Virus record (IMG/VR): IMGVR_UViG_3300030673_000004
Coordinates: 62,001-126,000 of that record
DNA: 64,000 nt
Strand: one strand, 5' to 3'
Position 1 is the first letter of the stretch. Each line of letters starts with the position of its first letter. Under the pieces are notes generated by a model. It searched no databases. It was not told where the DNA came from and was given only the letters and a program-made list of their open reading frames with translations. The translations under genes and the position numbers were made by a program. This document shows, one piece after another, positions 11,054 through 24,907 of the stretch.

Positions 11054-11881
11054 TCAACCTCGTAAACGAGACTCTACATCTGTGACATCTCGTGTATCCA
11101 CGGCGTAACCTGGACGAATAAAGCCAATAAAACCATCAACCTTTGCCTGTTCCTCATTATAAAACTTACCAGCAGGACCATCCAAGTAATGCACAAGACC
11201 AGTCTTTGCTTTAACGGAAGCAGGCAGAGTAACTAGATCTGTATAGTGCGCATGCACGCCTGACTTGAAAGCAGCCGTCTCGCAGTCATGAAAAATCAAG
11301 TCAGCCTGTTCATAGAACACTTTTATCTGACTAGGACAAAACTGGGTATCTGTTGTAAAGAAAACACGATACCCTTCCTCGGATGTCACCAAAATGCCAA
11401 ATGAGTCAGTCAAGGCTCGTCCATTCATGACATGAACAGTCTGAACAGGATCAAACGAAATACCTTCCCAAGTAAACGACTCATTAGGCTCAATAGGATG
11501 TAGATCAAAGTAATCAGCAAAAGTATTCACATGACCTTCAATAGACTCCAACGTACCGCGAAGAACATGCGCCCATAGCTTCGTAAGAACGGTACTAATA
11601 CCATAAAGCTTTGGCTTAGGTGCCCGAGAAACACCTCCCCAAGGATAGCGGTTAAACGCCAACCACTCAAGCCCATGGACATGGTCACCGTGCAAATGAC
11701 TGATATAGACACCATCTACATCAAAAGCACCCAGATTAGCGTATTGTGCTAGCGAGTAGGGCGCTGTAGCACCACAGTCAACCAACAAACGCTTACCTGT
11801 ATTTGATTGAATCACAGCCTGACACTGCCATAGACCAGCAGGAGCAAACGCGGAACCAGCACCAGCCCAAAGAATTTTCAT
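11054..11881 (-). CDS. MBL-fold metallo-hydrolase, Apyc1-like (putative cyclic-nucleotide phosphodiesterase)
   Basis: GAGSAF, LLVDCG, SHLHGDHVHGLE, TDT, FHDC, GVHAHY..L..LP...K.K..LVHY. Confidence 0.8.
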   Translation of the reverse strand: MKILWAGAGSAFAPAGLWQCQAVIQSNTGKRLLVDCGATAPYSLAQYANLGAFDVDGVYISHLHGDHVHGLEWLAFNRYPWGGVSRAPKPKLYGISTVLTKLWAHVLRGTLESIEGHVNTFADYFDLHPIEPNESFTWEGISFDPVQTVHVMNGRALTDSFGILVTSEEGYRVFFTTDTQFCPSQIKVFYEQADLIFHDCETAAFKSGVHAHYTDLVTLPASVKAKTGLVHYLDGPAGKFYNEEQAKVDGFIGFIRPGYAVDTRDVTDVESRLRG

Positions 11882-14660: not shown

Positions 14661-16940
14661 TTAATACAAATCTGGGCAAATCGAACACACAGGTGCTGCC
14701 ATAAAGGCATTGAACTTTCGGATAGCTCGATCATTCAGGCACGTTTTCAATGTATCCATAGAACAATTCTGGACATCAAACACATGAAGTATATGATATA
14801 CAAACGACAAACGTGATGGGTGTGACCAAGAATTATCATTTGCAGATATGGCAGAAATGAAACACTGCAGAAATTGGATCTGAAAATAAGTGGAAAAAGC
14901 TATAACACGAGAAGATACGCTGCTGTACCGACTATGAGACATAACATAAGAAGGCACATCATCAATACGCCTCTTAAGCGTCTTAAGATACGCACCTGCG
15001 ATAACTTTATACAAATGTGATATATCATCTGTAGAGTAAACAAGAGATGGACGTTCAAAACCAACAGCATCAAACCAGATATCGTTAAAGTAGCCGAGCA
15101 TCTCAATACCAGGCGCAATGAACTTACGGTCTGAAATCTCAAAAAACCTAGTCACACTCTCATACAATTTTGACGCAATGTGACGTGCAACGGTATCTGC
15201 ATCATGATTACTTAGAAGCTCTACAATTTCTTGAGTATACTCAGATTTCACAGTCTTATCCAAATAAGACAAAGTGTCTTCTTCAGAAGCTCCAGTTAAA
15301 ACAGTCACAGCAACAGCAGGAATAAAACCACGAGATACTTCACCGAAAAGGTCCTGACGTGCATCCACGACATCAGAATACTGACTCAAATTATCCATGT
15401 CCAAAAGACGATCAAAAATTGACGCCCCACTCACCCGACCATAGGAATAGGACAAAGTATGCAGTAACTCACGCTTATCCTCATTACCACGATAAGTAGT
15501 ACGAGAAGACTGAAATTCACGCAAGGTCCTGATAGACGAAGACCAAGGAGACACAGAAATCCGATGTACCATAACCTTAAAAATCTTTAAGCTCTTCAAA
15601 GCCAAAGGAAGCCAAATCCTTTGATACTCATGATAGTGCTGACGAGTAAAGAATAGCTTTAACAACTTAGGTACATCTAGAGCAGTAGCTCGGCACAAAC
15701 GAAACAATACAAGACCAACAAGTTCTGCAAAACCTGGCGTAGCTGCTCTTCTAGAGTCTTCAACACAAATACCGGGATACTCATCATTTCGGATATTGAT
15801 ATAACCAATAAAACGAATATCCTTATTATAGAAATTAAGACGCAAAAATGAATTGCGAGATAAGTTTCTAGCGTTTAAGCCAATCCAAAAATCACCAAAC
15901 TTAGCTACAGGCATGTCAATATCAGGAAGAGATCCCGACCCAGGTAAGGGTTTATTATTCCCAATATAACCAATATCTAAATCAGAAGGAATCCCATGAA
16001 GGCAGCGACGATATGCGGGACGATCATGGAAGGATAGCTGCGTATCCAAGGCTACTAGCCATGACAGTAATACATCTTTATTAGCTGCAATCCACACAGG
16101 ATCACATGCTAAATGAGCACACGTCATATACTCCTTCATTATAGCATAAACATATGAAGGATTTACAGAATTTAAGTAATCACCACCAATACCACGATAT
16201 TCAATAACACCATGAGATTGAAATTTAACTAAATTAATACTGACATGCCTATGCTTCGCAGCTAACCCTGTAAGACGTAAAATACCCCGAGCAGCCTCAG
16301 GCAAAAGAATATGATCTAAGCCTAATGAGGCAATACCGCAAAAAGATTTCAAGCGGGCTAGGGCATAAGAAAACAAGGACATGGTTGGAAAGCAATAGCT
16401 GTTTCCAAGGCGATTTACATGACGTAGATCACGCTGATCCAAGCAAGAAGTCAGCAACAAAAAAACCAAAGGATTAAAGTCATCACGAGTAATGGAAGAG
16501 GACGAAAATGTAAAATGGAGACCACAACTATCATTTGTTAAGCCGTTAACACGTTTTAACAAATCAAAAGATCTGCACAGTAACTTCTCACTATCTAAAA
16601 TAGAAACAACAGGGCTAACAACTTCAACAGGTAAGAAACGTGACCCATCAGTCAAATCCTCATAGTCTTCCTGCTGAGGATCAATAGATCCATCACGAGT
16701 AAAATGCCAGCATGTATAGTCAGCTTCCCCTTGATGCTTGTGACCAGCATAAACATTACAGACAGCCCCAATAGGCTGATCAAACTCACGCTGAAAAGCC
16801 GATGCTAAATCTTCACGAGAAGCACCAGGAACAGCAATAACGGTTTCAAACTCGAAACCGCAAGAATAACCGGCACGAGATAATTCAAGATCACTCATGA
16901 CAGGTACATCAAGGCTTTTATGTGCAAGAGTCAGACGCAT
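14661..16940 (-). CDS. Putative amidoligase (COOH-NH2 ligase, Amidoligase_2-like), paralog 3
   Basis: CGFEFE, WHFTRDGSI, VEVVSP, SCGLHF, HVSINL, IEYRGIGG; long unique C-terminus. Confidence 0.78.
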   Translation of the reverse strand: MRLTLAHKSLDVPVMSDLELSRAGYSCGFEFETVIAVPGASREDLASAFQREFDQPIGAVCNVYAGHKHQGEADYTCWHFTRDGSIDPQQEDYEDLTDGSRFLPVEVVSPVVSILDSEKLLCRSFDLLKRVNGLTNDSCGLHFTFSSSSITRDDFNPLVFLLLTSCLDQRDLRHVNRLGNSYCFPTMSLFSYALARLKSFCGIASLGLDHILLPEAARGILRLTGLAAKHRHVSINLVKFQSHGVIEYRGIGGDYLNSVNPSYVYAIMKEYMTCAHLACDPVWIAANKDVLLSWLVALDTQLSFHDRPAYRRCLHGIPSDLDIGYIGNNKPLPGSGSLPDIDMPVAKFGDFWIGLNARNLSRNSFLRLNFYNKDIRFIGYINIRNDEYPGICVEDSRRAATPGFAELVGLVLFRLCRATALDVPKLLKLFFTRQHYHEYQRIWLPLALKSLKIFKVMVHRISVSPWSSSIRTLREFQSSRTTYRGNEDKRELLHTLSYSYGRVSGASIFDRLLDMDNLSQYSDVVDARQDLFGEVSRGFIPAVAVTVLTGASEEDTLSYLDKTVKSEYTQEIVELLSNHDADTVARHIASKLYESVTRFFEISDRKFIAPGIEMLGYFNDIWFDAVGFERPSLVYSTDDISHLYKVIAGAYLKTLKRRIDDVPSYVMSHSRYSSVSSRVIAFSTYFQIQFLQCFISAISANDNSWSHPSRLSFVYHILHVFDVQNCSMDTLKTCLNDRAIRKFNAFMAAPVCSICPDLY

Positions 16941-16969
16941 AGATTCCTTATATATTTAAGCAACAACTG

Positions 16970-18256
16970 TCAAGTGTTACCTGCAACAATAGACTGAAGA
17001 TCAGAAATAATGCTAGTAGTATGCACAATATTCTTCACATAGTTATAAACTACATGCAGATCTCGCATCTCTTGATGCCGACTGTGAACAAGAGCACGCA
17101 GAATAGAAACAAAATGAGATGATGTTAAAAAGTCAAGCAAAGATTTTGCCCAAACAACGCGCTCTTCCGGTGTTCTTCCAGCAGTCAACCAGCGTCGAGG
17201 AGATACTGCAATCTGATGCAAGGGAAGAAAAGAACCAACAGTAGAGTGTCCTAAATGCTCTTTCCTAAAAGACAGCACTAAACCATGAACGGTATCTTTA
17301 GTGCAACGCATTTTAATACTGGGTTCCTGCGGTGAAGACCTAGGGTGAGGACCATCAAGGTCACAAACAGGGTATGTATTACTAGCAGCAGAACTAGTTG
17401 GGATCAACTCCTGCTCTGCAAAATAACGAGCAACAACTAAAGAGAGGCGCTCATGCTTAAGATGAGTAGCAGCAATCAAAGCACCCGATAAATGCTTCGC
17501 AATACCAATCAGAAGCTCCGGTGTTAGTAAAGTCAGCCAAGCACCGCCAATACCACGATACTCAACTAACTTGTTGTTGTTAGACAACTTGCAAGTATTC
17601 ACAGATACATACTTACCATAGTTGTGTAAAATTCGCTGCGACTCACATAAAGTAGCAACACTCTCCTTGCGGGTCAATGTATGATGTTTTCTATGTGCAT
17701 CAAAGCCGCCAACAGCGGATAAGGTCAGCCGTGTTGTTGCCTGACAGTAATGATTTGAAGAACGCCCAAAGTAGTTAAGTAACCCCATATCATCAGCCAG
17801 AGCACAAAACACATTAGGACGAAAAGTATCCCGTGAAAGACCAAGACACGAAAGTGATATATGTAACCCAGTAGATGGTCCTGTTTTACCACCAATACTC
17901 TGAACTAAGGCAAAAACAGACGTTAATTCGGCCAAAGCCTGATCATCCAGGACTGAAAATGTAGGAGAAATCAATTCAACAGGGCATGAACAACGATGAG
18001 ATGTTGTTATTGAACTATCTGATGTAACAGACCACTTATCATAGCTACGCGGACCATTATGATGAACACCATAGCCACCAGCTTGATCTGATACGCGACT
18101 AGACCCAAGAACAGCCAGAAGTCTATCTCGCACAGCAGTCCAATCAAGAGGGCTCGCAAACTCCAATTCCACACCAAATTTGGATTTGAATGTCTCCAAA
18201 TTTGTAAGTATGGATGGTAACGTAGCTACACGAGCATAGGACTCTAAAAAGTTCAT
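16970..18256 (-). CDS. Putative amidoligase, paralog 2
   Basis: FGVELEF, WSVTSDSSI, VELISP, STGLHI, YVSVNT, VEYRGIGG; ATG overlaps the upstream TGA. Confidence 0.8.
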   Translation of the reverse strand: MNFLESYARVATLPSILTNLETFKSKFGVELEFASPLDWTAVRDRLLAVLGSSRVSDQAGGYGVHHNGPRSYDKWSVTSDSSITTSHRCSCPVELISPTFSVLDDQALAELTSVFALVQSIGGKTGPSTGLHISLSCLGLSRDTFRPNVFCALADDMGLLNYFGRSSNHYCQATTRLTLSAVGGFDAHRKHHTLTRKESVATLCESQRILHNYGKYVSVNTCKLSNNNKLVEYRGIGGAWLTLLTPELLIGIAKHLSGALIAATHLKHERLSLVVARYFAEQELIPTSSAASNTYPVCDLDGPHPRSSPQEPSIKMRCTKDTVHGLVLSFRKEHLGHSTVGSFLPLHQIAVSPRRWLTAGRTPEERVVWAKSLLDFLTSSHFVSILRALVHSRHQEMRDLHVVYNYVKNIVHTTSIISDLQSIVAGNT

Positions 18257-20280
18257 GCAAATTCTCCCAAAAGGATTGGCTTTATCGCACGACAACCCAA
18301 CTGACGAGACAACTCATGAACAGCGCCCGTAACATACCAAGCACGTCGCATCGTTGTTGACAACTGAGCACCTGACTGTACTAGAGACTTCCTCAAAGAA
18401 CGAGTAATTCCTACCGTGTCGGAGTCAAACGAGCGCATTAGAAAGGGTGCAAGAAGTCTGCGAAGTTCTGCATAGGGAGTGAAATCAGTAGGCTGTGCAA
18501 AAACAGACATCACGTTCTCAACAGTAACAAAACTGAGTGCATCATTCCTAATGTAGTCAGAAAGGGTCGTGCAGTTCAAAGAACACTCAGGAAACAAGCA
18601 AACAAGAAGCATGTTGCGCGATACAATTTTCGTATCTTCCATACCAACCTGACGGAAAACACGATGAATATCCGAAGGACCGCAAGGATTTCCCTGGTGC
18701 AGAGCATCATCCATTATCTGAGTAACAACACGCTGAGTCATCGCAGGAAATGTTGTAGTACTCATATAGAACAAGACAGAATCCTTAGAACGTTGCATAG
18801 CAACACGTCGGACTCTATCTGACACGGAAGATACCCAGAGAGTATGGAGAGAAGCACGGTACATCTGGCGATATCGCGAAGTGCGCAGCACACGATTCAG
18901 AGAGGCTACAGAAGTCACCAACGGGGTAGCAGCAGAGGCATACTCACGCAAGAGACGCCCAGGGCTACAAGAACGCAGGGCTGCAATCAAAGAAGAAGAA
19001 AAGTCATTAGGGACAAAAGTCACCTGTGACCACTGATACAAAGACTCAAGTGCGCAAAAAATATCAAGCGCCTGACTCCGGTTTACACCAGAAGTAGATT
19101 GACGGATATTCCAGGATTCACCCGTCTTCTCCAAAGTTACCAAAGATGTACCAGAAGGCTCACTAAAACCAACAGAGGACAATGCACGAGGAGCCTTCAT
19201 AATAAACAACGAATTATCTCGCAGGTAAGCAGCATATGAAACACCCCGTACACGAGGCAACTTCCAGTAAAGGCCGCGAGAAGCTTCTGCATCAAGCAAA
19301 GAAGGAAAAACAGTTACGCGAGACGAGGGGAATAAAGAGTTTGATGGGTCCGTAGCTTGCAAAGCATAGCACAAGCGAGACTCGTAGATCGCAGACAGCA
19401 AGGGATGATCCAAAACACCACTAGCCACAAGAAAAGCTACACCAATACGACGAAACAAATCCTGCATAAAGGGCTCAGGATGCTCCAACCAGTTACCACC
19501 AGGAGAACGATACTCCATATAACCACGGCTAGATAAATTACTGGTATTAACAGAGTACCTGTCACTATAACCACTATCTCTAATAGCCTGTGCCATGCGT
19601 GTTCGCAAAGAACCACCCGACGCATTTAGAGCAGTTCGTACCAAATCAGGATTGTTACCCAACAATGACGTATAGAATACGTTAGCATAGCTATTATTCA
19701 AACGCCCACACTGAGACAAAACAAAGTGATCATCAACCAAAAGGCTAAAAAGCAGAGGATCAAAGTTTTCTCGATGAGGTGTATGAGCAGAAGAGACACC
19801 GACATGCATGCCACAGGATTCGTTTGTGTATGCCCTAATAGGTGTTTCACCATGTGCCCACCTATGGACTTTTAGATAAGTAGAAAACATATCCTGATAA
19901 TCCATCACAGGAGATACCAGTTCCAAATCAAAGGAACCAGTATCCCCATCGTCATCAAAATCAACATCATCCGGATCTAGCGAGCCATCACCTGTGAAAT
20001 GCCACTTAGTGTAACCATCGCCACGATGATCACCATACTCACGTGTAACGTGTCCAACCTCGCCACCAACAGCAGGAATGAAACTCTCAACACAATGCTG
20101 CAGATAACCACGCTCAGAATCAAAATCAGAACGATCTGGGTGCGTACCCGCAAGAATCATCTCATACTCGGCACCCAAACGAATTCCATGATGAGTAAGA
20201 TCTGCGTCAGACACGCTATCAAAGAGCTTAAGAGGAGAACGAAACAACTCGGGTGTGATTACAGAAGTAGGCATAGACAA
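18253..20280 (-). CDS. Putative amidoligase, paralog 1
   Basis: LGAEYE, WHFTGDGSL, LELVSP, SCGMHV, RYSVNT, MEYRSPGG. Confidence 0.78.
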   Translation of the reverse strand: MSMPTSVITPELFRSPLKLFDSVSDADLTHHGIRLGAEYEMILAGTHPDRSDFDSERGYLQHCVESFIPAVGGEVGHVTREYGDHRGDGYTKWHFTGDGSLDPDDVDFDDDGDTGSFDLELVSPVMDYQDMFSTYLKVHRWAHGETPIRAYTNESCGMHVGVSSAHTPHRENFDPLLFSLLVDDHFVLSQCGRLNNSYANVFYTSLLGNNPDLVRTALNASGGSLRTRMAQAIRDSGYSDRYSVNTSNLSSRGYMEYRSPGGNWLEHPEPFMQDLFRRIGVAFLVASGVLDHPLLSAIYESRLCYALQATDPSNSLFPSSRVTVFPSLLDAEASRGLYWKLPRVRGVSYAAYLRDNSLFIMKAPRALSSVGFSEPSGTSLVTLEKTGESWNIRQSTSGVNRSQALDIFCALESLYQWSQVTFVPNDFSSSLIAALRSCSPGRLLREYASAATPLVTSVASLNRVLRTSRYRQMYRASLHTLWVSSVSDRVRRVAMQRSKDSVLFYMSTTTFPAMTQRVVTQIMDDALHQGNPCGPSDIHRVFRQVGMEDTKIVSRNMLLVCLFPECSLNCTTLSDYIRNDALSFVTVENVMSVFAQPTDFTPYAELRRLLAPFLMRSFDSDTVGITRSLRKSLVQSGAQLSTTMRRAWYVTGAVHELSRQLGCRAIKPILLGEFA

Positions 20281-20448: not shown

Positions 20449-21525
20449 ATGCGAACGATGCCGTTCACCATAGTTACATGCTTCTATAAACTGTTTCAGG
20501 ATGCAGGTATCCGAGAAACTGTCAGAAACGAAGTAGCACGAGCTATTATACGTGGATGTGTCCGCATAAAATCCTATAGAGATCAGCGCAAAGCTATCAA
20601 AAACTTGATAGGTGACACTAGCGAACATCAAGTATATATAAAAGTTCAAGAACTCAAGCACTGCTATGAGATGCAGGTGCTTCTATGGAGAGCACTTTAC
20701 TGTTACATTGATACACAAGATATCTCCAAAGCAGCCTACCTATACCAGATGTCTCTGGCCGATCTAACTTGGGTCATACAACTACTATCAGAAACGCACG
20801 AGTTACAGCAAATACCCGATGTAGCACCAGCACACTGGACAACAACCCCAATAACACAACAAGATGTCTACGACATTGTACAGCACAGACGGGTACAAAG
20901 TACAATCCAAGGTCTACTACGCTACTCCAAAAGCGGTGTTGTTTGGGCGTTTGATCAAGGTATAACTAAAGAAGACTTAAAAGCGGATTTAGAATATAAG
21001 GCTATTGCTACTATACTTAGATATGAAGCAAGTCGCAGAGCAAAATGGCATCTCATAAATGTAGTTGTAATTTCTATGGGAAATGAACTAAACAACAAAA
21101 CACGTAAGTCTACATCGTTAGAATCCGGAAGAATTGTTGAAGAAACAGTAGCTGGGCCAAAAGAAAATGAACCCCAGCACACCCATGCGGCAGCTATGCA
21201 ACGCATAGTATCATTGGTTAGTACAAATGATGAAGGTGATGAATTTGAAATATCACGTGTGCCGTCAGATAATGATTTTGCAAGCCTAAGAAAAGTAACA
21301 GACATTATTGAGTGCATGAAAGAATCCCTCAATAAGCGCATACTTGACTACTTAGACGTAACAGTACTCGGAACACATAATGAACCATTTGAAACGTGGA
21401 TTGAACAGCAAGAAATAGAACATAAGCACCAACTAACTGATGATGCTATTGTCAAAAAAGCACGACAATTCTTCAAACTGACAGCTAAAGATATCAAACT
21501 AATGCAAGAGGCCCTAGTTGTCTGA
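20449..21525 (+). CDS. Hypothetical protein; weak sigma-factor region-2-like segment
   Basis: 358-aa ORF, first gene of the divergent unit; EDLKADLEYKAIATILRYE loosely resembles sigma region 2. Function is weak inference. Confidence 0.6.
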   Translation: MRTMPFTIVTCFYKLFQDAGIRETVRNEVARAIIRGCVRIKSYRDQRKAIKNLIGDTSEHQVYIKVQELKHCYEMQVLLWRALYCYIDTQDISKAAYLYQMSLADLTWVIQLLSETHELQQIPDVAPAHWTTTPITQQDVYDIVQHRRVQSTIQGLLRYSKSGVVWAFDQGITKEDLKADLEYKAIATILRYEASRRAKWHLINVVVISMGNELNNKTRKSTSLESGRIVEETVAGPKENEPQHTHAAAMQRIVSLVSTNDEGDEFEISRVPSDNDFASLRKVTDIIECMKESLNKRILDYLDVTVLGTHNEPFETWIEQQEIEHKHQLTDDAIVKKARQFFKLTAKDIKLMQEALVV

Positions 21526-23017
21526 GATACCTGTTACAGATGCTCCCATTCACCAAGTACTCAATGCCCTTAACCGTATTGAAGCAGAAAAGCATAGAAC
21601 TAAAAAAATTGAAATTTTACAAGAGCTCAAAGATAATCAAATAGCTCAGTGGATGTTCTATATAGACAGTCCTGTTAATAGACACTTTGGTATTAAAGTG
21701 TCTACAGAGGCTACACGACTATACTCAGGAACAGCTAAACCCGACGAAATGCTGACAAGGTTTGAGCAGTTTCAACAAATACTTGAAAAATTACTACAAT
21801 TAAAAATCACAAAACAAGATGCACTAGAACAGCTAGAACATTTATTAGAATCCTGCTCATACACAGAGCTATTCCGTGAAGGTGTTTGGTACACCCGTTT
21901 AATAAACAACGGACTCAGATTGGGCCTGCCTACATCAGCAGTAACAGAATGCTGGCCAGACCTCAAAATCACATCAACACTACCATACGCTCGATCTATA
22001 CTTGATACAACAGGATCTGTATCCGAGCACAAAAGAAAACAAATACAATATCCTTGCGTAGCAGAGCCTATTGTTGGTGGCATCCTCGCATCTGTAATCG
22101 TAGTTAACAGCAATTCATATGTTACAGCATTTGGAAGCCGTAAAATACCATGTTTGCAGCCATGGGCAGACACACTTGCTAGTTTTCTTATGGACGCACC
22201 ACCACTTGTAATTAATGGTGAGTTTATTACAAAAAAAGCATATGATGGGCTATCACGAACAAAACAACGAGAGCGCGTAATACAGCTATGCAAAACAAGT
22301 ATTTTTAATCAAGATGATAATACAGATCAGGCTAAGCAAGAACTCGTATTTATAATCTATGATATATTTACACTAGTATCTCTTCATACAGGTATGTTCA
22401 CACTACCCTATGGGCATGCTAAGGAGTCTTCCTTTTGCCGCTCTACAATACTATCAGCTTTAGCAAAAAAAGCTAGCCACCTAGACGTAACAATTAGATG
22501 TGTACATCAAATACTATGTTTTAACTTTGACGACTTAGAAGAAGCTCATAGGTTTTATTTAACACAAGGCTTCGCAGGAAGCATAATAAAGCCCTGTAAG
22601 GCACCCATAGTATTTAGACCATCTGAGTGCTTATTCAAATGGAAAGAAACAAAAAAGCAGATAGGATATATATTATCTATCTTCCACATCAAAGAAACTA
22701 TAGGAATTGAAGTTTTTGTACCCGATACAGGAATGACAGAACATCTGTACATACCGAATAAAGATGTGCGTGACTGGTTTCAAGAACACAAAAATAACCT
22801 AAACGGATACGCAGTTGAATTTAAGGCCACATCCACAGAAGGTACAGCAAAACTATGTGTACTAACTAAGTTAGTAGCTACACAAGAACCACTATCAGAT
22901 GTGCAAATTGCTGCCTTGAGTGAACGCTTCGGGATAGCACTAAATAGTGCAGAACAAATGTCCTTAAAGCAGTTTCAGACAGCGGCATATGACCTAACAG
23001 AGGAAGATAATGTCTAA
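21518..23017 (+). CDS. T4-type ATP-dependent DNA ligase homolog lacking the catalytic Lys (pseudoenzyme)
   Basis: N-terminus LNRIEAEKHRTKKIEILQELKDN; motif I reads AEPIVGG (not KxDG); INGEF, IIYDIF, GFAGSIIK, LFKWK. Confidence 0.85.
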   Translation: MSEIPVTDAPIHQVLNALNRIEAEKHRTKKIEILQELKDNQIAQWMFYIDSPVNRHFGIKVSTEATRLYSGTAKPDEMLTRFEQFQQILEKLLQLKITKQDALEQLEHLLESCSYTELFREGVWYTRLINNGLRLGLPTSAVTECWPDLKITSTLPYARSILDTTGSVSEHKRKQIQYPCVAEPIVGGILASVIVVNSNSYVTAFGSRKIPCLQPWADTLASFLMDAPPLVINGEFITKKAYDGLSRTKQRERVIQLCKTSIFNQDDNTDQAKQELVFIIYDIFTLVSLHTGMFTLPYGHAKESSFCRSTILSALAKKASHLDVTIRCVHQILCFNFDDLEEAHRFYLTQGFAGSIIKPCKAPIVFRPSECLFKWKETKKQIGYILSIFHIKETIGIEVFVPDTGMTEHLYIPNKDVRDWFQEHKNNLNGYAVEFKATSTEGTAKLCVLTKLVATQEPLSDVQIAALSERFGIALNSAEQMSLKQFQTAAYDLTEEDNV

Positions 23018-24485
23018 ATCATATCTAGAATACGTAAGTGAAGCTATTGAGGCATATAAAAACAAAGATGCAAAGACATTAGCTGCCTGTAAGCAATTAG
23101 CATTTACAGCACGAAGGTACCAAAAACAGAATAGCCAAAGCACAGATACAGTACTTAATCTCTACCCAATACTAGGTATTCATCAGTTAACAGAACTCAC
23201 TTGTAAGTATGAAGTCACATCAATTGAACAGTTCTATCAAGCCGTTCAGTCATATCAGCTAACAGATGTTATCGCTACAAATGCCTTGTGGCAGTGGCGT
23301 GCAGCGAAACAACGAATCCTGCGCACTAGCACCACAAATATTGTTGAACACATCAAACGTACACTCGCCAGAGTAGGCATAAAAACAACTGTAGTAGGGG
23401 AGTTCTCTAGACACAAGGATACAATAGCTAATCTAGAGTTTTGTATTGAAGTAGGATCACAAGATGAAATACTTTTAGCAAAAGCTACACTACAACAAGA
23501 ATTGCTAGCTGAAACTAAAATTACAGATATAGGTCTGAGTATAGATCTCAAAACAGACATATTTGATATTAACTGTTTCCTATATTTTGGAACACATCAA
23601 AATTTCTGCACGTGTTCAATATATCATATTGGACCTAAATGTTTTATTGATAAATTAAATCATAAGCTAGTTAGTCGTGGCTATGAATTAACAAGCACAG
23701 GATTACAAACACTAGAAGGCTTGCAAGTACCGTGTAGGTCGGAGAAGACTATATGGGATATAGTTGGATCTACCATACCCCCAACATCAGCACGTGATAG
23801 TATTGATGACATCATGTATGATACTACAAATCTCGTAACATATAAAACGAGTACAGGTGACACAGGAATAACCTATAGAGCAAAAGACTCAGCAAAAATA
23901 AAGCATTGCTTAGAAAATAAGAGTTTAACGCATGTAGCACTTATTATACAAGAGAATTCCTTAGATGCAGTAACACAAGCTATAGACCAGATACACATAC
24001 TAGTCAAAGATAGTGCTATTCCTGTCTATACAGGACTACTAGTAACATCAAACACACTAGAACATCTAAGTCTTGCAGCTAAAGTAGATTTTCTTATCAT
24101 AGAAGATGATGAAATCAATGCTCTATACAAAATAACACTACCCAAAGCAAGAAAGGTAGCTAAAAACATTATCATACGAAATCCCTTCATGTTCTCCCAA
24201 GGGATGTGTCTGACCAACTCATCTTTCCCAAAAGATGAAATTCTTACTATTCTAAACAAAAACAAAATAGCTATTGAGATAACAGGTAACTGCAACTACG
24301 CAGGAACGCCTGTTGACGCATGGAAAGACGTAATACAGACAAGGTGCGCTATAACCATAGGTTCGGCACAGTACGCAAAACAACAAACACAAAGCATAGT
24401 CTCAGCTAGAATAAAGTGCTGTCAAGCTCTCATAAGCCAACAACGTTTAATGGATGCGGCAGCCTTTGAAGAGTGGCTTAGGTAA
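23010..24485 (+). CDS. DNA polymerase X-PHP homolog with degenerate active sites
   Basis: VVGEFSRHKDTIANLEF (DxD changed to NLE), YHIGPKCF, GYELTSTGL, SEKTIW...IPPTSARD; PHP-like C-half lacks the HxH metal motif. Confidence 0.82.
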   Translation: MSKSYLEYVSEAIEAYKNKDAKTLAACKQLAFTARRYQKQNSQSTDTVLNLYPILGIHQLTELTCKYEVTSIEQFYQAVQSYQLTDVIATNALWQWRAAKQRILRTSTTNIVEHIKRTLARVGIKTTVVGEFSRHKDTIANLEFCIEVGSQDEILLAKATLQQELLAETKITDIGLSIDLKTDIFDINCFLYFGTHQNFCTCSIYHIGPKCFIDKLNHKLVSRGYELTSTGLQTLEGLQVPCRSEKTIWDIVGSTIPPTSARDSIDDIMYDTTNLVTYKTSTGDTGITYRAKDSAKIKHCLENKSLTHVALIIQENSLDAVTQAIDQIHILVKDSAIPVYTGLLVTSNTLEHLSLAAKVDFLIIEDDEINALYKITLPKARKVAKNIIIRNPFMFSQGMCLTNSSFPKDEILTILNKNKIAIEITGNCNYAGTPVDAWKDVIQTRCAITIGSAQYAKQQTQSIVSARIKCCQALISQQRLMDAAAFEEWLR

Positions 24486-24517: not shown

Positions 24518-24907
24518 ATGGACTTAGAATCTGAGCTGCAACAGAAAAAGAGTAGTTTAATACGCATTGGAGTAATCGGTGTTATCCTGGTAGTACTGGG
24601 TGCTGTTATAGGACGAACATCCGCGCCTCTTGAAGGAGTTTATAGCTCCAAATGGGCACGAACCATAGACAGCTTAAAAGTTGTCAATGAACAACAGAAA
24701 AAACTTGCAGATACGGCTAAGATCCGCATTGACTCCCTACAGATCATTCTAAAAAAACAAAAAGAGCTAACTGCTAGCTTGTATGCCGATGTAGTTAATG
24801 CTAAGTCAAATAGGACAGTAGAACATAACAAAGTCCTTGTACTAAATGATGCAGATCTCATTGCTAAATTTCAAGATGAGATAAGCAAAGTTAAACAAGG
24901 ACACTAA
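24518..24907 (+). CDS. N-terminal TM plus coiled-coil protein (i-spanin-like)
   Basis: RIGVIGVILVVLGAVIG transmembrane helix followed by a long helical Lys/Gln-rich region. Confidence 0.5.
   Translation: MDLESELQQKKSSLIRIGVIGVILVVLGAVIGRTSAPLEGVYSSKWARTIDSLKVVNEQQKKLADTAKIRIDSLQIILKKQKELTASLYADVVNAKSNRTVEHNKVLVLNDADLIAKFQDEISKVKQGH

Follow-up and report, generated by a model that had tools for sequence, protein, structure and literature searches.

A maintained phage DNA ligase homolog without its adenylation lysine is encoded beside a similarly altered PolX homolog predicted to bind it

A 375-kb phage genome encodes a full-length homolog of T4-type ATP-dependent DNA ligases that has lost the lysine that accepts AMP, together with five further catalytic residues, yet is held under purifying selection. 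The gene adjacent to it encodes a PolX/PHP homolog that has likewise lost its polymerase carboxylates and PHP histidines, and the two proteins are predicted to form a complex. An old repair pair therefore seems to have been turned into a non-enzymatic complex, although loss of activity is inferred here from sequence. The pseudo-ligase gene was found in a 64,000-nucleotide stretch of DNA, referred to here as the window; coordinates of the features discussed are collected in Table 1.

Table 1. Features of the pseudo-ligase locus and related genes. Coordinates are positions in the window, except for the last entry, which is given in coordinates of the phage genome (G000:C1).
Coordinates	Strand	Feature	Remarks
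11054-11881		Apyc1 anti-Pycsar homolog	E 2e-26
14661-20280	-	Three Amidoligase_2-like paralogs	Divergently transcribed, conserved neighbors of the block; context only, no functional link shown
20449-21525	+	Upstream gene, 358 aa	Conserved in all contexts and in the outgroup; only a weak lead that it is sigma-factor-like
21506-21525	+	Junction suggesting translational coupling	AAGAGG Shine-Dalgarno (21506-21511), 6 nt upstream of the start; TTG start at 21518; upstream stop TGA at 21523-21525; 8-nt overlap
21518-23017	+	Pseudo-ligase gene, 499 aa	TTG start, no internal stop
21518-21967	+	N-terminal helical DNA-binding-domain homolog (aa 1-150)	K30 and R127 kept; R95, G99 (now K) and K144 (now E/D) changed relative to active relatives
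21968-22651	+	Nucleotidyltransferase-domain homolog (aa 151-378)	
22052-22090	+	Motif I remnant	P-C-V-A-E-P-I185-V-G187-G-I-L190-A; I185 codon ATT at 22070
22208-22228	+	Motif III	V-I-N233-G-E235-F-I; Glu invariant
22568-22594	+	Motif IV	G-F-A353-G-S-I-I-K358-P; A353 codon GCA; Glu lost (A, F, S or D across the family); Lys invariant
22631-22648	+	Motif V	L-F-K374-W-K376-E; conserved Arg six residues upstream is Pro368
22652-22882	+	OB-domain homolog (aa 379-455)	Carries most of the predicted interface with the PolX-like protein
22883-23014	+	C-terminal helical extension (aa 456-499)	Beyond the stretch of the model that aligns to T4 ligase; shared with the nearest active relatives; residues 460-477 in the predicted interface
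23010-24485	+	Pseudo-PolX/PHP gene, 491 aa	ATG overlaps the ligase-like stop by 8 nt
24518-24907	+	Conserved gene, 129 aa	Sequence suggests an N-terminal hydrophobic segment
24907-25551	+	HNH endonuclease, 214 aa	Conserved; last gene of the syntenic block; dN/dS 0.01
G000:C1:246378-247361		Canonical DNA ligase, 327 aa	KLDGVR, LDGEF, EGGMLR and LLKVK; passes PF01068

Homology of the intact ORF to T4-type ligases is supported by sequence and by predicted structure. The PHROG profile phrog_114, annotated as ATP-dependent DNA ligase, matches with an E-value of 4.9e-17, and BLASTP to the T4-type ligase of Pseudomonas phage Astolliot (E 4e-13) aligns YPCVAEPIVGGILA with YPAFAQLKADGSRT. An AlphaFold2 model (pLDDT 79.5) has T4 DNA ligase, PDB 6dt1, as its top match, with a Foldseek E-value of 8.6e-19 and a VIA Z score of 20.3 over 397 residues, while the Chlorella virus ligase-adenylate matches with Z 18.9 and an rmsd of 2.6 A over 242 residues. 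The curated ligase models, in contrast, do not recognize the protein: Pfam model PF01068 (DNA_ligase_A_M) gave no hit at E-values up to 1, PF04675 gave only a sub-threshold hit (14.5 bits against a cut-off of 24.6), and no NCBIfam model matched.

The original prediction, that this ORF is a ligase homolog with the motif I lysine and the motif IV glutamate replaced and is maintained as a pseudo-ligase, is supported, but it understated the damage and missed the neighboring partner. Residues were mapped by the BLASTP alignment and by hmmalign of 157 homologs. At positions 71-100% conserved in 106 homologs selected for bearing the lysine, the equivalents of K185, D187, R190, D233, E353 and R368 are replaced in all nine known family members; in the window they read I, G, L, N, A and P. 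Position 185 is Ile in eight members and Arg in one, designated P0009. The only invariant lysines in the nucleotidyltransferase domain are the canonical motif IV and motif V ones, K358 and K374 (K376 is present in 8 of 9), so no new lysine stands in for the nucleophile. The nearest lysine-bearing relatives also lack the motif I Arg and have Asn in motif III, and their own activity is assumed. Six invariant cysteines might have suggested a new metal site replacing the AMP pocket, but all except C307 are shared with the lysine-bearing sister clade and so are not tied to the loss of activity.

The eight homologs, at 35-77% identity, are all full length, and the nine members, 499-508 residues in length, share 110 invariant alignment columns. 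They form a single clade with 100/100 support, on a stem of 1.13 changes per site, inside lysine-bearing phage ligases. Estimates of dN/dS were 0.10, 0.05 and 0.10 for the three measurable pairs, dS being saturated in the others; because dS for the usable pairs is 1.4 or more, the ratios are approximate. By domain, dN/dS was 0.09 for the DNA-binding domain, 0.12 for the nucleotidyltransferase domain, 0.05 for the OB domain, the most constrained part, and 0.16 for the C-terminal extension. All six homologs with DNA sequence also start with TTG or GTG, and gene order is conserved in seven further contigs. A scan of IMG/VR viral contigs with the family alignment found no relatives, and cultured phages yielded only one distant tblastn hit for the pseudo-ligase and none for the PolX-like protein. 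ORFs are sparse between 26 and 56 kb of the window, but reading TAG, TGA or TAA as sense did not restore coding density; the region is a 34-gene tRNA array. The phage encodes a separate canonical ligase (Table 1), which presumably performs nick sealing and to which the pseudo-ligase shows no significant BLASTP alignment. No NAD-dependent ligase or other PolX was found in the genome.

The overlap between the pseudo-ligase gene and the gene that follows it suggests translational coupling. The following gene is a PolX/PHP homolog by profile comparison, with African swine fever virus (ASFV) PolX the best solved match (E 4.3e-5), by language-model features (0.93, with 172 of 256 shared) and by predicted fold (Thermus thermophilus PolX, Foldseek E 2.3e-13). 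The residues aligned to the three palm carboxylates of ASFV PolX, D49, D51 and D100, are N, E and F in the window, none is conserved as Asp in six orthologs, the PHP HxH motif is absent, and the first helix-hairpin-helix of the 8-kDa domain has been deleted. Two outgroup loci, L009 and L011, carry a lysine-bearing ligase followed by a PolX with PHP motif DLHVHT or DMHRHT, the palm reading RDIDVLV in L009 and RDLELLV in L011. Sister lineages keep an apparently active ligase and PolX pair in the same gene order.

Prediction of a complex between the two proteins returned ipSAE scores of 0.83, 0.84 and 0.83, against 0.00 for the best of three controls. That mark was reached by 58 of 80 solved complexes and by 2 of 110 mismatched pairs, counts that hold only roughly because our own alignments were used. 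The structure alignments were shallow (9 and 6 sequences), and the PolX-like model has a pLDDT of 70, with residues 256-285 and 452-491 poorly modeled, and part of the predicted interface (457-468) lies in that low-confidence tail. On the pseudo-ligase side, the predicted interface involves the OB domain and the C-terminal extension.

Taken together, these results suggest, with a probability we place at roughly 0.6, a maintained pseudo-ligase that by established ligase chemistry should not be able to self-adenylate or seal nicks, that is probably translated in tandem with the PolX homolog, and that acts with it as a non-catalytic heterodimer, both proteins descending from an apparently active gap-repair pair. 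The most likely mode of action, which is inferred, is binding without chemistry. The pocket residues that contact the AMP and 5'-phosphate at a nick in real ligases (E235, D282, K358, K374, K376, and motif Ia R208 in 8 of 9) stay invariant or nearly so, and all three domains stay under selection; the complex therefore probably still recognizes a strand break, or a phosphate or nucleotide ligand, and occupies or marks it rather than repairing it. DNA binding may nevertheless be weakened, as the conserved basic residues R95, K144, R190 and R368 are lost, and net charge fell to between -5 and +1, against +9 to +39 in the sister clades, although many active ligases are also near neutral (median pI 7.1).

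Other explanations appear less likely. The protein might still be an enzyme with altered chemistry, sealing only pre-adenylated nicks, removing AMP from abortive ligation intermediates, or using the retained nucleotide pocket for a different nucleotidyl transfer, perhaps with a nucleophile supplied by the partner. The conserved pocket residues and the constrained nucleotidyltransferase domain favor this. The loss extends well beyond the lysine, however; motif VI (RxDK) has decayed in the window's subclade, no new invariant Lys, His or Cys specific to the clade occurs near motif I, and the partner is itself stripped of catalytic residues, which leaves this reading doubtful. Simple decay of a former ligase gene is suggested by the multiple losses, the long stem branch and the failure of PF01068, but is contradicted by nine intact orthologs, the low dN/dS, and the conserved synteny and start context, and can be all but dismissed.

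The original prediction offered three roles: a nick clamp, a dominant-negative inhibitor of host ligase, or a decoy for defense sensors. The latter two, in which the protein would sit on nicks in host DNA to block host LigA, or mimic a phage ligase to absorb a host defense sensor or inhibitor, are possible but unlikely. The wider region carries counter-defense-type genes, including the Apyc1 homolog, phosphoesterases and a phosphatase, and the phage keeps a real ligase that such a decoy could protect. Yet nothing links the gene to a defense system: PADLOC and NCBIfam searches gave no hit for the pseudo-ligase, the upstream gene or the PolX-like gene, apart from one chance-level NCBIfam match for the last, and no known sensor of ligases turned up in the literature searched. 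Remote similarity to the phage's own ligase makes the protein a poor mimic, and strict co-inheritance and the predicted complex point to a joint structural role rather than a stand-alone decoy. A protein-only scaffold, in which both folds survive merely as a platform for other phage proteins, such as the upstream 358-aa protein, and no longer touch nucleic acid, would fit the marked loss of positive charge in both proteins, the loss of basic DNA-contact positions, the deleted helix-hairpin-helix and the strong constraint on the OB domain at the predicted interface. We consider it improbable, since the invariant motif III, IV and V pocket residues and the constrained DNA-binding domain would have no reason to persist in a pure scaffold.

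A more speculative possibility, to which we attach little weight, is that the conserved block of five genes, from the 358-aa gene to the HNH nuclease, is a strand-break-reading switch. Nicks or gaps made by the HNH nuclease, or left by replication, would be recognized without repair by the ligase/PolX heterodimer, which would then recruit or activate a co-translated transcription factor, coupling gene expression to the state of the phage DNA. That would be a functional analog, built from different parts, of the nick-loaded clamp that activates late transcription in phage T4. The sigma-like character of the upstream protein rests on weak feature and structure neighbors, which include Sigma70_r2 and r4 clusters but with TM scores of only 0.2-0.39; Pfam scans of six orthologs gave no hit, and hhalign found no similarity to the genome's own sigma-like ORF.

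Nucleic-acid ligases are usually treated as enzymes by definition, and in the literature searched we found no full-length DNA ligase homolog that has shed its adenylation site yet is held by selection. Here the loss happened together with inactivation, as inferred from sequence, of the PolX partner, a rare natural case of a whole two-enzyme repair module converted into what is predicted to be a non-catalytic complex, with apparently active sister modules available for direct comparison. If the complex still recognizes nicks or gaps, it would be a natural strand-break reader that does not repair, which would bear on how large phages manage, protect or signal from breaks in their DNA, and it could serve as a nick- or gap-binding reagent. 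The tree also shows at least three further independent lysine-less lineages among phage-type ligases, so pseudo-ligases may be a recurring, overlooked class, at risk of annotation as DNA ligase, as the PHROG hit would suggest.

Among known systems, the best structural matches to the pseudo-ligase are T4-type three-domain ligases (T4 gp30, 6dt1; Prochlorococcus marinus ligase, 6rar; Rhizobium phage ligase, 9fzx), with which it shares domain architecture and order, the motif III Glu, the motif IV Lys and the motif V lysines, but from which it differs in lacking the motif I Lys, Asp and Arg, the motif IV Glu and the Arg before motif V, and in having an extra C-terminal helical extension. The partner protein is closest to bacterial PolX-PHP enzymes (T. 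thermophilus PolX, 3au2/3auo; Deinococcus radiodurans, 2w9m), matching the overall PolX core plus C-terminal PHP-like domain with TM scores of 0.54-0.60. Viral repair pairs, such as ASFV PolX and ligase or the Phaeocystis globosa virus PolX-ligase fusion (PMC5537341), similarly encode a family X polymerase and an ATP-dependent ligase together, but in those systems both enzymes are active and carry out base-excision repair, while here both partners lack their catalytic residues. The stand-alone ligase DNA-binding domain of some jumbo phages (Iyer et al. 2021, PMC7824862) is likewise a ligase-derived, non-catalytic module proposed to act by binding; that protein, however, is only the helical domain, occurs in phages without any ligase, and was proposed to recruit a host ligase, whereas the pseudo-ligase described here is full length, coexists with a canonical phage ligase, and is paired with a PolX homolog that has lost its catalytic residues.

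The pseudo-ligase gene is a single open frame with no internal stop. Its TTG start has an AAGAGG Shine-Dalgarno sequence 6 nt upstream and lies 8 nt inside the end of the preceding ORF. The coordinates and residues given in the original prediction, which placed Ile at the motif I lysine and Ala at the motif IV glutamate of an intact T4-type ligase homolog, are exact.

Coordinates of the pseudo-ligase gene, its motifs, and other features of the window and of the virus record (G000:C1)
Coordinates	Strand	Size	Feature
window:21518-23017	+	499 codons	Pseudo-ligase
window:22052-22090			Motif I region, P-C-V-A-E-P-I-V-G-G-I-L-A; ATT at 22070 (Ile185)
window:22568-22594			Motif IV region, G-F-A-G-S-I-I-K-P; GCA gives Ala353
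window:23010-24485		491 aa	PolX-like gene
window:24907-25551	+	214 aa	HNH nuclease at the end of the block
window:14661-20280	-	759, 441 and 675 aa	Three large Amidoligase_2-like paralogs
window:11054-11881	-	275 aa	Metallo-beta-lactamase-fold protein matching the anti-Pycsar Apyc1 family
window:11956-14621			Two calcineurin-like phosphoesterases and a dual-specificity phosphatase-like gene
window:29533-55819	+	34 genes	tRNA gene array
window:30265-30360		96 nt	tRNA call with an odd two-base anticodon
window:32072-33478	+	468 aa	ORF with TROVE (Ro60-like) domain inside the tRNA array
G000:C1:62001-126000		64,000 nt	Extent of the window in the record
G000:C1:246378-247361		327 aa	Canonical ATP-dependent ligase
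G000:C1:244950-248510			Locus (L001) of the canonical ligase

Several independent results agree that the protein is a ligase homolog and that the residue mapping is right. The Pfam model for the ligase catalytic domain does not recognize it, and only a sub-threshold N-terminal hit appears, but the PHROG family of phage ATP-dependent ligases hits at E 4.9e-17 over residues 11-377. BLASTP against the annotated T4-type ligase of Pseudomonas phage Astolliot (E 4e-13) aligns YPCVAEPIVGGILA with YPAFAQLKADGSRT, which puts Ile185 on the lysine, Gly187 on the aspartate, and Leu190 on the arginine of motif I; it also aligns VINGEFI with VVDGEIV, AGSIIK with EGIILK, and LFKWK with QVKFK. An AlphaFold2 model built on nine family members (pLDDT 79.5) has T4 DNA ligase as its best solved match (Foldseek E 8.6e-19; VIA Z 20.3 over 397 residues), and its NTase + OB core superposes on the Chlorella virus ligase-adenylate at 2.6 A over 242 residues (Z 18.9). 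Matches among AlphaFold DB Swiss-Prot models are all three-domain ATP-dependent ligases.

A profile search of 1.84 billion representative proteins found 158 homologs. We aligned 157 of these to the family profile and tabulated every position that is at least 70% conserved in the 106 lysine-bearing sequences. Of 36 such positions, most are retained in the nine members of this family. Those changed in all nine are K185 (to I, or R in one member), D187 (to G), R190 (to L, M or I), D233 (to N), E353 (to A, F, S or D), R368 (to P), and three DBD positions, R95, G99 (to K) and K144 (to E or D). Retained are K30, R127, G188, G234, E235, D282, G351, G354, K358, K374 and K376. Motif VI (RxDK) is still visible in five members but has decayed in the subclade to which the window's protein belongs. 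The only invariant lysines in the NTase domain are the canonical ones of motifs IV and V, so no substitute nucleophile is apparent. By the established mechanism of covalent nucleotidyltransferases, in which the motif I lysine forms the enzyme-AMP adduct, we infer that the protein should be unable to adenylate itself. Six cysteines (C113, C180, C258, C307, C334 and C360) are also invariant in the family; five are shared with the lysine-bearing sister clade (proteins P0010 and P0012) but not with most other ligases, and may represent a structural or metal-binding feature of this branch of phage ligases.

Eight homologs, from peat, freshwater, sediment and wastewater metagenomes, are 35-77% identical. 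All are 499-508 aa in length, and the alignment has 110 invariant columns. The six with DNA sequence also use TTG or GTG starts. For the three pairs in which dS is not saturated, dN/dS is 0.10 (window versus the homologous contig L002, dS 1.43), 0.05 and 0.10; in all other pairs dS is saturated while dN is 0.42-0.73. By domain, dN/dS is 0.09 for the DBD, 0.12 for the NTase, 0.05 for the OB and 0.16 for the C-terminal extension, although these values are approximate because dS is high. In a maximum-likelihood tree the nine form one clade (100/100) on a long stem of 1.13 changes per site, within a well-supported group (100/99) that includes two lysine-bearing clades. The pattern is one loss, a burst of change, then constraint; neutral decay is excluded. 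Loss of the motif I lysine is not confined to this clade. At least three further, independent lineages of phage-type ligase homologs lack it (proteins P0030, P0122, P0114 and P0149, reading EPLYNG, EPLISG, ESRLSG and QPSIGG), with P0114 and P0149 forming their own long-stemmed clade.

The virus record is 375,537 bp in length, with direct terminal repeats, and contains one ATP-dependent ligase that passes the Pfam model. This canonical ligase carries KLDGVR, LDGEF, EGGMLR and LLKVK; its gene overlaps the end of a 169-aa ORF by 4 nt and follows a 232-aa ORF. No NAD-dependent ligase was found. The pseudo-ligase, therefore, is not the phage's only candidate for nick sealing. Within the window, the tRNA array covers nearly all amino acids and explains the low density of long ORFs in that region; recoding of any one stop codon did not restore ORF density. 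The one tRNA call with an odd anticodon may contain an intron or be a pseudo-tRNA. The TROVE-domain ORF (E 1e-11, with weak vWA hits) suggests an RNA quality-control protein sitting among the phage tRNAs. The Apyc1 match (E 2e-26) is above the Pfam cut-off.

The ORF that follows the pseudo-ligase starts with an ATG that overlaps the pseudo-ligase stop by 8 nt, behind a GAGGAAG stretch. Four lines of evidence identify it as a family X polymerase homolog with a PHP-like domain: a weak Pfam thumb hit; language-model neighbors that are all PolX-PHP clusters (0.93, 172 of 256 features); a profile hit to ASFV PolX (E 4.3e-5); and Foldseek matches of its model (pLDDT 70) to T. thermophilus and D. radiodurans PolX (E 2.3e-13, TM up to 0.60). 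In the profile alignment, the catalytic D49, D51 and D100 of ASFV PolX fall on N, E and F in the window, and on K/N/R/S/T, E/Q/T and F/S/V/I in the orthologs, so none is conserved as Asp. The PHP HxH motif and the first helix-hairpin-helix (HhH) of the 8-kDa domain are missing. Its dN/dS against L002 is 0.13, and it is the only PolX-like gene in the genome.

All seven other contigs that carry a family member show parts of the same gene order, as far as each contig reaches: Amidoligase_2 paralogs on the opposite strand, a gene of about 355 aa, the pseudo-ligase, the PolX-like gene, a gene of about 125 aa, and a 214-aa HNH nuclease. The Amidoligase_2-like paralogs, transcribed divergently from the block, are conserved as its neighbors in every contig that reaches that far; the 675-aa one evolves faster (dN/dS 0.2-0.3). 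The HNH nuclease is almost unchanged between the window and L002 (dN 0.006, dS 0.61, ratio 0.01), making it far more constrained than its neighbors, and is fixed in position in all contexts, unlike a mobile homing endonuclease. The nearest lysine-bearing relatives (proteins P0010 and P0011) lie in the same arrangement: a homolog of the 355-aa gene (hhalign probability 98.8%) is followed by a small gene, the ligase, and a PolX-PHP of 561 or 556 aa. That PolX passes the Pfam thumb and PHP models in L009, one of the two outgroup loci, where it keeps RDIDVLV in the palm and DLHVHT in the PHP domain; the corresponding sequences in the other locus, L011, are RDLELLV and DMHRHT. The ancestral state was therefore a ligase + PolX pair with catalytic residues, and both partners lost theirs in the lineage leading to this phage. 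The outgroup ligase finds 383 cultured-phage ligases by tblastn while the pseudo-ligase finds one, in line with the accelerated stem.

Co-folding of the two family alignments gave ipSAE 0.83, 0.84 and 0.83, against 0.00 for the best of three controls. That mark was reached by 58 of 80 solved complexes and 2 of 110 mismatched pairs, although these counts hold only roughly because our own alignments were used. The predicted interface uses the OB domain and C-terminal extension of the pseudo-ligase (residues 387-409, 439-445, 460-477) and, on the PolX-like protein, the palm and thumb and the C-terminal region (109-135, 196-203, 243-245, 259, 278-279, 303-305, 457-468). This reflects a model's confidence rather than a measurement, and part of the PolX-side interface lies in a poorly modeled tail. 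The OB domain is also the most constrained part of the pseudo-ligase. The extension lies beyond the part of the model that aligns to T4 ligase but is shared with the apparently active sister clade, so the interaction may be ancestral.

The evidence supports a non-catalytic heterodimer derived from a gap-repair pair. We favor retained recognition of a strand break, or at least of a phosphate or nucleotide ligand, for two reasons: all three ligase domains stay constrained, and make sense together only as a DNA-encircling unit, while the invariant or nearly invariant residues are exactly those that contact the AMP and 5'-phosphate at the nick in real ligases (E235, D282, K358, K374, K376). Against this, both proteins have lost much positive charge relative to their sister clades (net -5 to +1 against +9 to +39 for the ligase side), several conserved basic positions are gone, and the PolX side lost one HhH, so binding could be weaker, more selective or absent. 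The complex could shield a bound break from host enzymes, keep it open, or mark it for another factor. The suggestions in the original prediction of a dominant-negative inhibitor or a decoy are not excluded, but nothing here supports them specifically, and residual chemistry on pre-adenylated ends is unlikely given the number of catalytic losses.

The protein is a homolog of T4-type ligases but fails the defining catalytic features, so it should not be filed or annotated as a DNA ligase. Literature searches, in a collection that is incomplete and so cannot prove absence, found no description of a full-length lysine-less phage ligase or of a paired dead ligase and dead PolX. The nearest concepts are two: the viral PolX + ligase repair pairs, as in ASFV and the Phaeocystis globosa virus fusion (PMC5537341), which are active, and the stand-alone ligase DBD noted in some jumbo phages (PMC7824862), which is a fragment in ligase-less phages.
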